Shown here one piece after another: positions 9,733-57,519 of a DNA stretch of 64,000 nucleotides. The DNA is taken from NCBI RefSeq assembly GCF_006345805.1, contig NC_043003.1, positions 105,338,001-105,402,000 of the forward strand, read 5' to 3'. Positions within the stretch are counted from its first letter, which is position 1; each line of letters opens with the position of its first letter. The translations under genes and the position numbers were made by a program. The DNA is from Octopus sinensis (lineage: Eukaryota). Below the pieces are notes generated by a model. That model ran no database searches. It saw nothing but the letters and a program-made list of their open reading frames with translations, and was not told where the DNA came from.

Positions 9733-10233
9733 TATGTATGCGCATACTCTCACACACACATGCACATTCACTCACACACTCATACGCAAACATATGCATG
9801 TAGGAATTATCCTAGGTTATAAATAGTATCCTTGAAAATCTTGCTGTATTATGGAGTTCCAAAATGTGAAACACATTTTCCTTCTGAATTCCATCCACGT
9901 TCATTGATTTCCACATAGCATGGAATCCAATAGTGAAACAGGTTTCGCATTACAACACTCTGTGTTGCAGCAATGCTTCCATAACATGGCAGCAGCCTGC
10001 TCACAGGAGTGCGTATGCACACACATGCACACACACATACATACATATGCACATGTACACACATACATATACATGACCTGTTATGATTTTTTTGTTGAAA
10101 AGAAAACACTCAATGAAAAAATAGACAAAAGCAGTGATTGTGTATAATACAGTTGGTGATTTTGTTTCATATAAAAACTATAATACAAGACCACACAGCA
10201 TTGGCAGTCAGGTCTATGCTAATATATATAATA

Positions 10234-18007: not shown

Positions 18008-19297
18008 CGAGGGGCGTTCAATAAGTAATGCCCCTGACCCACTTCCCATAGCAGTAGAGCAACGAAACTTGGCACAGTTATTAGTCTTTTTCTACATAGG
18101 AACCACCCGGAGTTACGCATTTCTCCCATTGTTTGATGCAGGTCTGGAGACCGTTTTTGTAGAAGACCCCAGCTTGGTCCTCCAACCTGAACGTGACTTC
18201 AGAAATCAAGGCTGCATCATCTGGGAAACGCTTTCCTTTCAAAAACAACTTCATGACTGGGAAGAGGTGAAAATCAGAGGGTGCAAGGTCAGGAAAGTAG
18301 GGGGATGGGGGAGGAGTTCATAGCCATACGCCTGTGCTTCTGATCTGGCGACAAGCGAGTTGTGGACCGGAGCGTTGTCCTGCAGGAGGAGGATGCCTTT
18401 GCTGGTCTTGCCCCGCCTCTTGATTTTGATAACTTCTCTTAATTTCCTCAAAAGTGAAGCATAATAAGCTCCTGCAATTGTGGTACCCTTTGCCAGGAAA
18501 TCTGTCATCACTACTCCGTCCTGGTCCCAGAAGACTGTGAGCATGACCTTGCCAGCGGAGGGCTGCACCCTTGCCTTCTTTGGAGGAGGTGAGTCACGGT
18601 GCTTCCACTGCATTGACTGGGCTTTGGTCTCTGGATCATCGTGATGGACCCAGGTTTCATCCTGTGTAATCAGTCTTTTGAAAAATTTTGACTCATCTTC
18701 TTGGCACATCTCCAAATTCACCCTCGAGCACTCGACGTGTTCTTGCTTCTGGAAAGGCGTGAGCAACCTGGGAATCCATCTGGCAGACACCTTTTGCATA
18801 TGCAAATGGTCATGAATGATAGTTTCCACAGACCCGGTACTAATCTTGACCTCATGGGCTATTTGGCGAATAATTATGCGTTGATCTTCCAAAATGGCAG
18901 CCTCAACTTGACGGACAGATGCCTCATCAATGGCAGAAGGGGCGACCAGATCTGGGAGCTGTTTCCACAGAGTTCCGACCATGTTTGAATTCACGATGCC
19001 AGCGTTTTACAAGGTCATATGATGGGGCATCATCACCATAAGTTACTTTCATTCCATCAAAAGTCTCCCGTGGTGTGCGTCCTTTCAAATACAAAAACCA
19101 GATCACTGCTCGACACTCAACAGGCTCCATTTCACACTTGACTCGGTTCAAACACCCTTAAATCAGAAACCACAATTAATTCAGAGCTGTAATTTGCCAC
19201 TTACTCTATAGAGATATAAATGATTGCACATGCAAAATTTCAGCTAGATCAAACAACTGCAAGTGGGTCAGAGGCATTACTTATTGAACGTCCCTCG
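18008..19297 (-). mobile_element. Full-length mariner transposon (DD34D, irritans/Hsmar2-like), frameshifted transposase at about 19130-18081
   Basis: TA target-site duplications on both sides and 37-bp TIRs CGAGGGGCGTTCAATAAGTAATGCC... with 2 mismatches. Motifs WIPRLL, ITQDETW, QDNAPVH and YFPDLAPSDF are present, with two frameshifts. Confidence 0.95.
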
Positions 19298-19602
19298 TAA
19301 TTCAGTGTCAGCTTGTCTCACCTAGTGATGTTATATTCAAGCCATTTTTGGTCTTCCCGCTTCAACCATATATAGAAGCTGGTTTTTTCGACACAATGTT
19401 TATTGAAAAATCACATTTTTATGATAAAAATGTTGTTTCAAAGGTATTTTCACTAAAGGTTCTTACTTAAAGCTAAGTAAGTCTTCACTTTAATAAGGAT
19501 ACATTGGCATTAGAGATGTTATAACCCCAGAAACGGTCTCAGGTGCATTGGTATCAAAAGCCAAAAAGCTTTTCAAAGTAAAACTCTCTTTTAGATATTA
19601 TT

Positions 19603-41428: not shown

Positions 41429-41497
41429 CATGCGCAGTGGGCCTATCCGGGTTTCGATGACGTCAGCCACGTGACTGCATTAATCAGTCTTTCAGTT
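41429..41497 (+). promoter_or_regulatory. ANT core promoter: NRF-1-like half site, CRE, E-box, Inr
   Basis: CATGCGCA at 41429-41436, perfect TGACGTCA at 41458-41465, CACGTG at 41468-41473 (GCCACGTGAC), then TCAGTC/TCAGTT. Locally CpG-rich in otherwise CpG-poor DNA. Confidence 0.7.
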
Positions 41498-41583
41498 GAG
41501 GTTGACACGAAAGCCAAGATCGGGGAAATCTAGCGGCTCGTCTTCACCTACGTCTACAATTCATTGCCGAATAAGAACTGAAC
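41486..41583 (+). other. ANT: Non-coding first exon of ANT (intron 41584-44446)
   Basis: Starts at Inr-like TCAGTC/TCAGTT (41484-41497), contains no ATG and ends at a consensus donor AAC|GTAAGT (41584). This pairs naturally with the acceptor directly before the ATG. Confidence 0.7.
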
Positions 41584-41869
41584 GTAAGTCAGCAACCCCT
41601 TTTTTTTTTTCTATCAACGCTTTTATTTTCACACAGCAAATATATATCTATTAGCATCGATCACTGAAGACGCATAGACTCTGACACACGGACAGATTTA
41701 TTAGAAAAAAAAAAAGAAAAAGAAAAAGAAGAAAAAGATGTAGGATTTTTCATTTCCAAGAAATTCTCAAATCTTTAATTTATGATTTCTACATAATTTT
41801 TCTTTTTTTCTAATTTTAATCCTTCAGAGATTAATTAACTGCACAGACACAAATCAGTAATTGTACTAG

Positions 41870-41907
41870 GATATATATACTCTCTCTTTATGTATATATA
41901 TAGAGAG

Positions 41908-41940
<33 letters not shown>

Positions 41941-41963
41941 TATATATATATGTACTCTCACTT

Positions 41964-42000
<37 letters not shown>

Positions 42001-42070
42001 TATATATATGTACTCTCTTTATATATGTATATAAAGACAGTATATATATGTACTCTCTCTTTATATATAT
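41870..42070. repeat. Compound (TA)n/(GA)n/(CT)n minisatellite in ANT intron 1
   Basis: About 3-4 units of tactctc..(ta)n..gagagag. Confidence 0.8.
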
Positions 42071-42399
42071 AAAATATGTATTAGAGATAAAACCACTATT
42101 ATGCTACTCAAACAGTGATAGTCATAAAACAATACCTAAGTAACATAATATATATATAATTATAATTTTTTTTAAATATATAACTTATAACTAGATCTCA
42201 AAAAGTATAAAATGAATGATAAATATATAATATAATAAGTAAAAACACTGCGTACGTTTCAATGCTGCAATTAAATTCGAATTACAATTAATTAATATAT
42301 ATATATATATCTTGGAACAAGGAATCGGTCTTCATTGTCTGAGCATTGTTAATGTGGGAGGCAGGGGTGGAATGGCAACGATGGAGGAATAATTGCAGC

Positions 42400-42433
<34 letters not shown>

Positions 42434-42862
42434 GTATATACGCTATATTTGTGGTTTTGATGTGTGAAATTGTAAAATGCAAAGAGTAGGTTAATAAAGG
42501 TTACAAGAGGCCTAACCTCATCTTTTGACGCCCATAACTAGGCCAGTGCCCTCTAATCACGCATTTATTGCATTTTATCTTGTAATATTTCTGCCCCATT
42601 ATCGGAGTAAATGGAATTGTTACATAATATTCTTAATCTTGACCTTTAATTCAACATGTTTTATATTTATTGATATATGTTTTTCATTCTGGGTGGGTTT
42701 TTAAGCGACGGCTGTAGATAATTATGTAATATGTTGCCGGTGAAAATATTTGTCCTTGAGAGAGAGAAATGTTAAATTTGTGGCATTGGTTGGAAGTCAA
42801 CTTGAATTATTTGTGTCGTGTCATGAATGGCTTATTTCTTTATTATTATTATTATTATTTTA

Positions 42863-43148
42863 TAGGCGATCTTTCGTCTCTAGTAGACCTTTCCGTCGAT
42901 TTCCGTAAAAAACTTCTTTTTTTTTTACGTATGGGCTTGCGGTCTCCCACACTCCATCAAACACACACACATGTACATCAATGCTTCCCATGCACGCTAA
43001 CTTCATAAGAACTTCCCTCGTCATACAATCGCTTTCTCTTAGTCTCTTTCGCTCTCATTACTTCAAAAGTTCCCGCAAGCCCATATGTAAAAAAAAATTT
43101 TTTTACGGAAATCGACGGAAAGGTCTACTCGAGACGAAAGATTGCCTA
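42863..43148. mobile_element. MITE with about 80-bp TIRs in ANT intron 1
   Basis: 42863-42942 is the reverse complement of 43073-43148 (TAGGCGATCTTTCGTCTC... / ...GAGACGAAAGATTGCCTA). Confidence 0.75.
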
Positions 43149-44446
43149 TTTCTTTAATATTATTATTATTTAATTATTTAATTATTTCTGGCTGAATAAA
43201 AGTTTGATGTTGAAAGTCACGGTGTTGGCCACGCGACTCCACTCTTCCTTGTTTAATGGAATCTGGTGAGAGAAGAGAGACAGGAAAATGTCGATCGGTC
43301 GCCGCCAAATTGTTGACCTCGTGGCTTGCTTCAGAACGAATAACACATAAATTCCACCATGGATATCCATCTGTCTTTTAATATGCGAATGCTTGTCTTT
43401 ATTATATAAAAATGGACATTTCTCTTATCAGTGGGAGACGGGTTCACGCGTACTTGTAGATATTTTTTAGTATGGAAGTATTTTAATTTCTAATTAAATT
43501 TCTTTTTCTTTCCTTTTGCTGCTATCCTGAATAAATCGTTTAACATTGTCAAAGTCTTAATAATTAATGTATGTCAGTGTTATACACTTAAGCTGTTTCG
43601 TTTAGTCTCGATGTTCTTTTTAACCTTTGTCAAAGTCACTATCTTCAACTAAAGTTGTATCATCGCCATTTCTTCTTCAAAAATCCAAAACCCTTCCCCG
43701 AATTTTTAAACTTCTATCATCGTCAATTTATTTATTACAAGTGAGTGACAATCCCATATTTCTTAAGGGAACTTGTTTCGTGTCTAATGTACAAAGCGAA
43801 GCAGATTTATGGCAAAATTCATTACCTGAATTTCGAAATTAGGTCACGCTTATTACACAAACTCAACATTAACTTTGTTCTCCCAAATGATACGATTTGG
43901 AAAGTTCATATTCCTATCTAGGTATTTCCACAAATAATGGATTTCATCTGCTTCAAAGTGACAGAAACGCTTTCTCACAAGTCGTCCTCCATTCACCCAA
44001 CACTTGAGTGCTTTCATATCTTCTCTAATTATCTTCGCATTCACTTGTAGGACCATCTCTTTATAACATAATTCTTAACGTTTAAAGTTTTTCTGAATCC
44101 TTAATGCTTTACAAATTTATATTCAGTTATCTGGGGTTTTTTTTTAAATAGTTTCTTCCTCCGATCGATCGTCAATAGCATTCACTTTCAGCATAAATTT
44201 TCTATTGATAAAATCTTACCTTGATGAATGTCATTTGACGAATTACCGACCGCTTAATAATTATTTGAAAGTCAAACATTTTTATCGACTATTGACAAAT
44301 TAAAATATATATTTATACATATTCCGAAATTCACAATTATATTTATTGGTATTGCATTTTTGTTTATTCGAATTATGATAGAAACGATATTTTTTTTTTT
44401 TTTTTAGTTCTACAAACTAATACTTTTTTTTTTCTTTAAATTTCAG

Positions 44447-45355
44447 ATGGCAAAACTTGGATTTGCTGAGAATTTCGCTCTTAGTGGAGCAGCTGCTATC
44501 ATATCCAAGACAGCCGCAGCTCCAATTGAACGAGTAAAGCTGCTGGTTCAAAATCAAGATGAAATGTTGAAGAGTGGTAGGCTGAAGGAGCCTTACAAGG
44601 GTGTGATTGACTGCACAATGAAGACCTTCAAGTCCGAGGGTGTCTTACCATTCTGGCGTGGCAACTTGGCTAACTGCATCAGATATTTCCCAACCCAGGC
44701 TCTCAACTTTGCTTTCAAAGATCAGATCAAAATCATGTTTAAATCTAGTAAGGCAGATAGTTACACTTTGAAGTTTACCAAGAATGTGGCATCAGGCGGT
44801 GTTGCTGGAGCTTTGTCCCTGTGCTTTGTCTATTCCCTCGATTATTGCCGAACCCGTTTAGCTAATGATGCCAAGAGCAGCAAAAAGGGTGGTGAGCGCC
44901 AGTTCAACGGTATGGTCGACGTCTACCGCAAAACAATAGCATCTGATGGTGTTGCCGGACTTTACAGAGGTTTTGTGATCTCTTGTGTTGGAATCGTTGT
45001 CTACAGAGGGTGCTATTTCGGTTTCTATGACACCTTGAAACCAATCGTCATTGGTGACGATGCCAGTCTCTTAATGTCCTTCGCACTTGGATATATTGTA
45101 ACCATCAGTGCTGGTCTTGTCTCTTATCCTATTGATACAATCAGGAGAAGAATGATGATGACATCCGGTGAAGCAGTCAAATATAGTGGATCCATTGACT
45201 GTACGATGAAGATCGTCAAATCAGAAGGATTTATGTCATTGATGAAGGGTGCTGGTGCTAACATCCTCAGAGGTGTTGCTGGAGCTGGTGTCTTGTCAGG
45301 GTTTGATAAATTCAAAGAACTGTATGTGGCTTTCCGTTTGGGCAGATCATCCTAA
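44447..45355 (+). CDS. ANT: Mitochondrial ADP/ATP translocase (SLC25 carrier), plant/fungal-type sequence, intronless CDS
   Basis: Intact 302-aa ORF. It has three carrier repeats (PIERVK, SLDYCR, PIDTIR), the motif [14 protein letters not shown] and the ANT-specific RRRMMM signature. The ATG follows a polypyrimidine tract and acceptor (tttcag|ATG) with a CTAAT branch point at 44417-44421. Confidence 0.97.
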
Positions 45356-45582
45356 TATAATCTGTTGGTTAGGAGGCAAAGTGAAATAAGAATTTGGTAG
45401 ATAAAATTTTTCAAAGTTTTAGACAGTAATGCTGTGACTTTCAAAAGAACCTGGTTTGACTGTATGGAAATTGACCAGCCTGGGGCTCAGTTGTTAAGAC
45501 CAAGTTATTGAGCACAAACTTCACCTATTACCTGTATTTTAAAGTACCTTTTGAAGATGGACCCGACTTGTCGCAGTTAATT

Positions 45583-45588
45583 AATAAA
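45583..45588 (+). terminator. Candidate proximal polyadenylation signal of ANT
   Basis: AATAAA about 230 nt after the stop codon, followed by T/GT-rich sequence. Another AATAAA lies at 46803-46808. Confidence 0.45.
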
Positions 45589-46297
45589 CAAAATTAACTC
45601 GTTACTCTTGTTCTAAAGTTGTGCTTTTTCTTTACTGTAATTTCCTGGTTCCACTGTTAAATTTTGTTAATGAGTTTTGGAATTTTTATTTTACTGTGCC
45701 CAATGCCTAGGTAAAATAAGGGAAAAAAAACAGCCTATAATTTAATTTTTTTTTCAACAGGATCACAGCATTCTTGGCTTATATCTTGTATTCTCTTATT
45801 TCCATGAATTTTTATTGTAAATGCAATAGCTCTTAGTTCTTGATTGGGTGTCCATTCTGTGGATATATTTAGCCTGTAAGTTTGTTACTCCACCTCTGTT
45901 TTCAGATAGGTTGATAAAAAAAAAATGTTTGGGAAGTTAGGCTTTTTGTTTTCATTAATTTTCTATTAATAGGGTGTGGTATTCCTAAGAAAATGAAAAG
46001 AATTTTGGTGGGAGATTGTAATACTTGGTGTCACCAAAATATTCTAGTGTTAATGTGATTGGAAAAGTTTATCACATATCATTGTTAACCTCATGTCCTG
46101 TCCGTATTTTTTTCCCTGGCTTGCAATTGTCAGGTCTTCAACTGATTTATTGACCCATTGCAAGAATGACCAAGGAGTTTAAAGACCTATTCAGTTTATC
46201 CAAGTTTAAATTGTCATGATTTAAATGTGCATGGAACAGCTTACACTAAAACGTAAAACAAAACTAACCTGGACATGCAGCTGAATGTAACTCTGAA

Positions 46298-56856: not shown

Positions 56857-57519
56857 TCATTCAACTTTAGTTTGATCGGTTACCGTTTCTTCCATAGTTT
56901 CTCTCTCTTCCTCTTCATTTCCATTGGAAAGATTCTTCAATTTACGCATCTTTTGAATCTGCAGTTGTTTCTTTTTCTTAATCTCTTTCCATTTTTCTAT
57001 GGCAACATTCCTTCTTGCAGAAAAATTATTCTTCCAAATCGTGTGTTGTTCTTCTGTTTCACTGATTTCTTTCCTCAGCTGCTTCACACGATTTTCCCAC
57101 TCATCATCTTGGAATAGTGGGCTTTTTTTCCCACTCTTGTCATTTTTGTTGTTATTGCCGATTGTGTCATAAAGGTAGGACAAATCATCATCCTCTTCCT
57201 CTGTTCTCACTTTATCATCAGGTGTATCTTCCAAAAGGGTTTTAATGTCATTGCCATTGTTGATATTGCTGTTGTGGTTATTATTATTTATGCTGTTATT
57301 ACCATTGTTATTGTTGTTATTGTCACTGTTAGTTAAATTACCTTCATCCTCCTGTTGAATTTCATCTCCATCCTCTGTTCTTCCACCACCTTCAACACCC
57401 AAGTCTTTTCCCTTGACATCACTGCTGTCATCATCATCATCCTCATCTTGAATTAATCCATTATCTTTATGGTCCATATTTGACCCTGACTCTGGAGATA
57501 CATCATTCATTTCTGCCAT
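56857..57519 (-). CDS. First coding exon (or short gene) of an uncharacterised protein: acidic/Asn-rich disordered N-terminus plus predicted coiled coil
   Basis: 220-aa non-repeat ORF with poly-D/poly-N tracts, then helical WENRVKQLRKEISETEEQH...KWKEIKKKKQLQIQKMRKLK. There is a possible phase-0 donor ACG|gtaacc at 56884/56883 and a possible upstream acceptor near 57655. Confidence 0.6.
   Translation of the reverse strand: MAEMNDVSPESGSNMDHKDNGLIQDEDDDDDSSDVKGKDLGVEGGGRTEDGDEIQQEDEGNLTNSDNNNNNNGNNSINNNNHNSNINNGNDIKTLLEDTPDDKVRTEEEDDDLSYLYDTIGNNNKNDKSGKKSPLFQDDEWENRVKQLRKEISETEEQHTIWKNNFSARRNVAIEKWKEIKKKKQLQIQKMRKLKNLSNGNEEEERETMEETVTDQTKVE

Follow-up and report, generated by a model that had tools for sequence, protein, structure and literature searches.

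We analysed a 64,000-nucleotide stretch of the Octopus sinensis genome (contig NC_043003.1, positions 105,338,001–105,402,000), hereafter called the window, which contains four open reading frames (ORFs) of at least 150 amino acids. One of these, a 302-amino-acid ATG-to-stop ORF at positions 44447–45355 on the forward strand, constitutes the complete coding sequence (CDS) of an ADP/ATP carrier in a single uninterrupted exon, as identified from the ORF itself, Pfam, and matches to structure databases. Three copies of the Pfam domain Mito_carr (PF00153) were detected in the protein (E = 1.9e-67; score 223.5 bits, cut-off 22.3), which is the arrangement of three tandem repeats of approximately 100 residues expected of the SLC25 family. 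An earlier reading of the letters, made without database searches (the sequence-only reading), had described the gene as an animal ADP/ATP translocase with plant- and fungal-type signatures, and had attributed it either to an ancient second ANT lineage or to an old horizontal transfer or retrotransfer. The evidence presented here indicates that it is very probably a functional, vertically inherited nuclear gene encoding a mitochondrial ADP/ATP carrier of the ancestral holozoan AAC lineage.

The gene has a spliced, non-coding first exon. In a 1208-nt transcript contig from Octopus bimaculoides (L005), nucleotides 1–87 aligned to window positions 41508–41583, and nucleotide 88 onward aligned to 44447–45565. 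Exon 1, which belongs to the 5′ untranslated region (UTR), was accordingly placed at 41500–41583 (+; 5′ end approximate), with a GTAAGT donor whose gt begins at 41584. The 5′-UTR intron, located by the same alignment and by its splice sites, spans 2863 bp (41584–44446, +), and its pyrimidine tract and terminal cag abut the ATG, the acceptor tttcag ending at 44446. The 3′ UTR comprises approximately 250 nt (45356–45610, +; end approximate); the transcript aligned through 45565, and the sole AATAAA or ATTAAA within 1 kb 3′ of the stop codon is the AATAAA at 45583–45588. Just 5′ of exon 1 (41455–41480, +), the sequence contains TGACGTCA, which resembles a cAMP response element (CRE), and the E-box CACGTG, and these motifs may have a promoter-proximal function.

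Approximately 20 kb around the carrier gene, including a conserved downstream ORF, was collinear with the O. bimaculoides genome at 80–92% identity. Between the two species, the carrier CDS differed at 21 of 906 sites, with a ratio of nonsynonymous to synonymous substitution rates (dN/dS) of 0.086, and the protein was encoded on chromosome-scale contigs in three octopus assemblies. The spliced 5′ exon, the collinearity, and the low dN/dS together establish that the gene is endogenous and constrained, that is, host DNA under purifying selection and no contaminant. This agrees with the sequence-only reading, which had considered the gene endogenous on account of the surrounding repeats and the spliced 5′ exon. 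The idea that assembly contamination or a chimeric join, rather than octopus DNA, accounts for the segment has nothing in its favour except the unusual similarity of the protein. It is refuted by the O. bimaculoides synteny, with its conserved neighbouring ORF, and is also opposed by the three chromosome-scale contigs, the spliced host transcript, and the host repeats nearby, among them a mariner-type transposase remnant.

Two further 5′ exons may lie far upstream. The NCBI model of an Octopus vulgaris isoform of 323 amino acids (P0003) carries an N-terminal extension that is not conserved in other species. Searches with this extension (tblastn) located two unverified candidate exons, one at 9920–9941 (+; MESNSET..., with a donor gt at 9942) and the other at 19443–19475 (+; GIFTKGSYLKL). 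Immediately before the Met, the isoform reads KLN, whereas the window encodes KFQ upstream of 44447. The model may be an annotation artefact, or else the isoform may use a micro-exon. The mariner-type remnant, a 247-amino-acid ORF on the reverse strand at 18251–18994 that matches Pfam Transposase_1 (partial DDE domain; E = 1.1e-23), sits between these two candidate exons, and microsatellites are also present in the window. Downstream of the carrier gene, positions 56857–57519 on the reverse strand contain a 220-amino-acid single-exon ORF that is rich in Asp/Glu and Asn, has a Lys-rich C-terminal part, and matched no Pfam family. Its counterpart in O. bimaculoides (L004, 18897–19511), with 82% conservation, occupies the corresponding place in the locus, and the ORF is probably a real, lineage-restricted gene.

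Intronless coding sequence in octopus and bivalves

The orthologous CDS was a single exon in the oyster Magallana gigas, in Mya arenaria, in O. bimaculoides, and in one ENA contig, and in all four a pyrimidine tract and cag directly preceded the ATG. A single coding exon in both octopus and bivalves means that the intronless CDS is at least as old as the split between cephalopods and bivalves, and any retroposition must have occurred earlier than that split. The layout is thus not specific to the octopus and says nothing about a recent transfer. The sequence-only reading had suggested that an intronless CDS fits either kind of transfer; a very old retroposition could account for the exon structure, but for nothing beyond it.

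Such a retrocopy would have been inserted before the cephalopod–bivalve split, gained an upstream promoter exon, and replaced its intron-bearing parent. A single coding exon combined with a lone 5′-UTR intron ending at the ATG is frequent in retrogenes with a captured 5′ exon, and other intronless Ant genes have been noted in tunicates (Lim et al. 2011, PMC3155547). However, simple intron loss accounts for the structure equally well, and any poly(A) remnant or target-site duplication would have been erased in the more than 500 million years since. We consider the retrocopy scenario unlikely; it bears only on how the exon structure arose and is compatible with vertical inheritance in the ancestral AAC lineage.

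The M. gigas orthologue (OY970751.1) is flanked by NPRL3/MPG and RPL34, and these three genes had no tblastx match in the 64-kb octopus window. NPRL3 and MPG also lie next to each other beside the vertebrate alpha-globin cluster. In Mya arenaria (CP111013.1), a second Mito_carr gene (307 amino acids; position 1–26, −) lies approximately 10 kb upstream of the orthologue and may be a tandem paralogue.

Sequence hallmarks and predicted structure

Each of the three carrier repeats comprises two long helices joined by a matrix helix and carries one motif of each gate network. Repeat 1 (aa 4–100; 44456–44746, +), delimited by the best Pfam stretch, includes H1, H2, the matrix-gate motif PIERVK, and the cytoplasmic-gate motif FKDQIK. 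Repeat 2 (approximately aa 106–203; 44762–45055, +, borders approximate) includes H3, H4, and the motifs SLDYCR, in which Ser replaces the signature Pro, and YDTLK. Repeat 3 (approximately aa 208–300; 45068–45346, +, borders approximate) includes H5, H6, and the motifs PIDTIR and FDKFK. These assignments were based on residue mapping and on an AlphaFold model with six long helices at residues 6–35, 73–98, 106–140, 176–202, 208–237, and 269–300, and short matrix helices at 53–64, 156–167, and 249–260. The model thus contains the six transmembrane helices, three short matrix helices, and threefold pseudo-symmetry of SLC25 carriers. The RRRMMM hexapeptide, the signature of ADP/ATP carriers, was read at aa 233–238 (45143–45160, +) and aligned to R234–M239 of bovine ANT1.

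The functional residues are those of an ordinary ADP/ATP carrier. The substrate-site residues of the octopus protein (K21, R79, G182, I183, Y186, R187, S226, and R275) are identical to those of the bovine protein (K22, R79, G182, I183, Y186, R187, S227, and R279). The matrix network consists of E28/K31, D132/R135, and D230/R233 with the Gln brace Q35, and the cytoplasmic network of D92/K95, D195/K198, and D287/K290. The protein therefore carries every sequence mark of the AAC/ANT subfamily that we looked for: RRRMMM, the substrate site, the [PS]x[DE]xx[KR] and [FY][DE]xx[KR] networks, and three repeats. The mechanism of this subfamily has been described from structures (Pebay-Peyroula 2003; Ruprecht 2014, 2019, as cited in PMC10027655). 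The octopus protein is a six-helix SLC25 carrier and, by analogy with bovine ANT1, yeast Aac2/Aac3, and Thermothelomyces AAC, should exchange cytosolic ADP for matrix ATP by alternating access. Its substrate site would be central, and salt-bridge gates on the matrix and cytoplasmic sides would open in turn. Ordinary ADP/ATP exchange and an ordinary inhibitor profile (carboxyatractyloside and bongkrekic acid) are predicted. The supposition in the sequence-only reading that inhibitor sensitivity and permeability-transition behaviour could differ from those of canonical ANT finds no support in the sequence, because all the substrate and gate residues are conserved.

In searches against solved structures, the octopus carrier scored higher with fungal proteins (yeast Aac3, 412.7 bits; Aac2, 407; Thermothelomyces AAC, 400) than with bovine ANT1 (289), the full-length matches to solved AAC structures having E-values of 1e-119 to 1e-123. 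In Foldseek comparisons with the predicted model, the best matches were carboxyatractyloside-bound yeast Aac3 and Aac2, with template-modelling (TM) scores of 0.79–0.86, followed by 6gci and 1okc. Yeast Aac2/Aac3 (PDB 4c9g/4c9h and 4c9j/4c9q) and Thermothelomyces AAC (6gci), which are approximately 65% identical to the octopus protein over its full length, share with it the Ser-for-Pro replacement in the H3 signature, QNQDEM, MMMTSG, the lack of a cleavable presequence, and the substrate and gate residues. Unlike these fungal carriers, the octopus protein has holozoan or animal states in common with bovine ANT1 (I19, C126 within SLCF, T196, and D204) and additional cysteines at positions 77, 134, 180, and 189, and it is not nested among fungi.

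Canonical ANT (bovine ANT1, 1okc; human SLC25A4/5/6/31; Drosophila sesB; and Caenorhabditis elegans ant-1.1) belongs to the same family and shares the fold, RRRMMM, the substrate site, and the gates, but is only approximately 51% identical to the octopus protein, which lacks LQVQHASKQ, YPLDF, ADVGKG, MMMQSG with its three-residue insertion, and GAWSN. In the alignment, the bovine blocks opposite the octopus ones are LQVQHASKQ, YPLDFARTRLAADVGKG, MMMQSGRKGADIMY, and GAWSNVLRG. The core-type states V36, P130, and Q239 are replaced by N36, S130, and T239 in the octopus, and the insertion is absent, so the protein does not have the marks of the core ANT group. Seven cysteines (56, 77, 126, 134, 180, 189, and 252) are present, as against four in bovine ANT1, of which three (C56, C128, and C256) are kept in the octopus carrier. 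The motif observations of the sequence-only reading were thus well founded: all the plant- and yeast-type blocks it quoted were located in the octopus protein, the contrasting animal ANT motifs appeared in the bovine alignment, alignment to yeast confirmed the Pro-to-Ser change that gives YSLDY as in yeast and fungal AAC, and both cysteine counts were correct.

Relatives and phylogenetic position

For each homologue search, the best 120 matches were listed. Among the matches listed, the named sequences at 84–97% identity were all from molluscs: Octopus, Argonauta, Mya, Mactra, Dreissena, Magallana, Crassostrea, Ostrea, Saccostrea, and Pinctada. Many further matches were marine transcripts, mostly from Tara Oceans, JGI, and Logan, some of which were 95% identical to CAPTE1 of Capitella and are therefore annelid-like. 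The identity of the octopus carrier was 85% to the Capitella and Helobdella proteins, 81–82% to Nematostella, 75–79% to Lottia, 75% to the choanoflagellate Monosiga, 67–68% to Oikopleura, 60–70% to fungi and plants, and 48–53% to core ANT. Among the sampled matches, members of the carrier clade were at least 80% identical, and everything else was at most 66–70% identical.

Trees were built from named sequences, the final set combining the aligned sequences of Lim et al. (2011; PMC3155547) with octopus and other mollusc, fungal, and plant sequences. A 155-taxon neighbour-joining tree of database matches and representatives at 50% identity had recovered an animal AAC-type clade (bootstrap 90%) and an ANT clade (96%), but its backbone support was near 0, and the smaller named-sequence sets were used instead. 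In these, the animal AAC-type sequences (octopus, Lottia, Capitella, Helobdella, and Nematostella) formed a clade with Oikopleura (87–94%), and this clade was joined by Monosiga (95–99%) to the exclusion of the other sequences. The core ANT clade, which takes in the database sequence P0173, was supported at 100% with the octopus carrier outside it, and the grouping with vertebrate and insect ANT that would have told against a second lineage was not observed. In the analyses of four groups, the two animal lineages came together in 54–89% of the bootstrap replicates and the mollusc type grouped with fungi in at most 3%. Conserved-site patterns with named fungal and plant anchors joined the mollusc type to canonical ANT at four sites, to fungi at none, and to plants at one. 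With the same anchors, 25 unique changes were counted in canonical ANT and five in the mollusc type; with the sampling that includes the sequences of Lim et al., unique changes at otherwise invariant sites numbered 18–20 in core ANT and 3–6 in the AAC type.

The closest named systems are the non-core Ant homologues of Lim et al. (LOTGI1/2, CAPTE1, HELRO, NEMVE1/2, and OIKDI1/2; PMC3155547, Appendix S2/S4), which fall into the same clade, share its sequence hallmarks, and are 75–85% identical to the octopus protein (Oikopleura, 67–68%). Cys134, within YSLDYCRTR, is present in cephalopods, bivalves, NEMVE2, and HELRO, whereas Lottia and Capitella lack it. The Monosiga brevicollis carrier (MONBR), the sister of the animal AAC type, has NLAN and SLCF but lacks C77, T196, and K112, the marks of the animal clade. 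The lineage is thus present in cephalopods, bivalves, gastropods, annelids, cnidarians, and appendicularians. Its plant- and fungal-type signatures are retained ancestral states, because fungi, plants, and choanoflagellates such as Monosiga have them too, and canonical ANT is the diverged form.

These relationships also decide the question of horizontal acquisition from a fungus or plant, which would explain the yeast- and plant-type motifs and the intronless CDS together. The similarity scores point that way, given that yeast AAC outscores bovine ANT1 and that identity to fungi and plants exceeds identity to canonical ANT. However, the protein is closer still to Monosiga and to Nematostella, Capitella, and Helobdella (80–85%), with which it clusters; neither nesting within a fungal or plant donor clade nor a patchy distribution was found, fungi joined the AAC-type sequences in at most 1% of the replicates in the named-sequence set, and the site patterns favour the animals together. 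Fungi, plants, and choanoflagellates all have the motifs, which are hence ancestral, the host-type gene structure is kept across mollusc classes, and the composition is host-like. A transfer is contradicted by the trees and highly improbable, and of the two origins first proposed for the gene, the ancient second lineage is the one that the trees uphold, since they group the octopus protein with Monosiga and with the carriers of gastropods, annelids, cnidarians, and appendicularians.

Several considerations weigh against our assignment of the gene to a functional carrier of the ancestral holozoan lineage. The trees are neighbour-joining trees of approximately 285 columns assessed by bootstrap, all the holozoan sequences came together in just 48–62% of the replicates, and it is ambiguous where the long-branched core ANT attaches with respect to Monosiga. 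The AlphaFold model is of moderate confidence (mean pLDDT 74, pTM 0.68), and the mitochondrial location, transport activity, and inhibitor sensitivity of the protein are predictions from its sequence. The proposal that this lineage provides the principal carrier of the octopus, discussed below, draws on the 2011 data set for Lottia and annelids and on expression in bivalves.

A very abundant carrier family of approximately 299 amino acids was observed in the plankton metatranscriptomes of Tara Oceans and JGI (at least 120 sequences listed). Its members are 72–77% identical to the mollusc clade, contain YSLDYCRTR, and join Oikopleura within the AAC-type clade of animals in the tree. The cDNAs have AT-rich UTRs and AATAAA and lack the dinoflagellate spliced leader, and the transcripts look metazoan.

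Two carrier lineages and their probable sorting among animals

The two lineages can already be recognized in the supplementary maximum-likelihood tree of Lim et al. (2011; PMC3155547). There, a long-stemmed "core group" contains vertebrate ANT1–4 and the sequences of amphioxus, sea urchin, Ciona, Drosophila, Daphnia, and nematodes, and a short-branched group next to yeast contains those of Lottia, Capitella, Helobdella, Nematostella, Oikopleura, and Monosiga. The data set consisted of whole-genome protein sets, and the core group includes no Lottia, Capitella, Helobdella, or Nematostella sequence. Lottia and Nematostella each have two AAC-type copies. Among tunicates, Oikopleura has only the AAC type and divergent derivatives of it, and Ciona only the core type, which implies that both lineages coexisted at least until the tunicate ancestor. 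The text of that paper notes ancient Ant duplications and losses; the non-core group appears in its tree without discussion, and the octopus was not in its data set. In the literature, we found no paper discussing the mollusc ANT type.

The core type is found in deuterostomes as well as ecdysozoans, and the ancestral type in cnidarians, in lophotrochozoans, and in one appendicularian, so the bilaterian ancestor must have had both. On the most probable reading, a slowly evolving ancestral holozoan AAC lineage has been retained in molluscs, annelids, cnidarians, and appendicularians, and canonical ANT, as found in vertebrates, insects, and nematodes, is a separate, strongly diverged lineage; both date at least to the bilaterian ancestor and were later sorted among the phyla. 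The loss in ecdysozoans postulated by the sequence-only reading agrees with the 2011 data set. A single arthropod record, from the mite Tetranychus truncatus (UniProt A0A3G5AP62), was considered as an ecdysozoan member of the AAC lineage and rejected: it is 89% identical to the Mya protein and stands beside Mactra in the tree, and no other mite relative of it occurred among the 120 best matches. The record is probably mislabelled or a contaminant.

In the octopus, the AAC lineage is somewhat more probably the principal ADP/ATP carrier of the mitochondria than a minor additional isoform. The opposite arrangement, in which a canonical ANT performs the bulk of ADP/ATP exchange and the AAC gene is a specialised second isoform restricted to certain tissues or to stress, draws on the long coexistence of the two lineages, which means that some genomes may keep both, and on the duplicate AAC-type copies of Lottia and Nematostella, which leave room for specialisation. 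In the 2011 data set, however, Lottia, Capitella, Helobdella, and Nematostella yielded no core ANT sequence. Expression in bivalves also argues for a major role: assemblies of the oyster orthologue occur in 828 data blocks, almost always on short contigs (<10 kb) that are taken to be mostly RNA-seq assemblies, and proteomic studies of Mytilus californianus gill and of Perna viridis detected proteins that carry the name used by NCBI for this lineage. ANT entries in a transcriptome of O. vulgaris paralarvae under different diets and temperatures (PMC6635378, supplementary file 1) were considered as a canonical octopus ANT and rejected, because their best matches are Anopheles and Drosophila proteins. 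They adjoin matches to insect cuticle proteins and crab metallothionein, have log2 fold changes of 7–11 with diet, and are probably prey RNA rather than octopus genes. On balance, a dominant canonical ANT in the octopus appears rather doubtful.

The octopus may lack a canonical ANT, and the core-less Lottia, annelid, and Nematostella data suggest that the AAC lineage is the only type of ADP/ATP carrier in molluscs. The wider proposition, that octopus and molluscs in general lack canonical ANT and that two ancestral paralogues of bilaterian or earlier age have been sorted reciprocally, seems to us evenly poised between being right and wrong. Under reciprocal sorting, the mitochondria of lophotrochozoans, cnidarians, and appendicularians would depend on the conservative, yeast-like carrier, and the diverged one would be the sole type in vertebrates, echinoderms, amphioxus, Ciona, arthropods, and nematodes.

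Our verdict is that the octopus gene is real, functional, and ordinary, and of modest evolutionary interest. It is already annotated in public octopus genomes at NCBI, and the apparent either/or distribution of the two lineages among phyla, although visible in the published tree, has hardly been discussed. In annotation, the gene should be named the octopus mitochondrial ADP/ATP carrier, and neither a plant-like nor a transferred gene. The textbook animal ANT is the derived form, with large parts of the animal kingdom keeping a more yeast-like carrier, and results obtained with mammalian or fly ANT need checking before they are transferred to cephalopod or bivalve mitochondria, even though nothing in the octopus sequence suggests that its transport mechanism or inhibitor profile would differ. 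If molluscs do lack canonical ANT, the permeability transition, the fatty-acid-dependent proton leak, and the redox sensitivity of the cysteines, of which this carrier has seven, would need to be studied separately in cephalopods.

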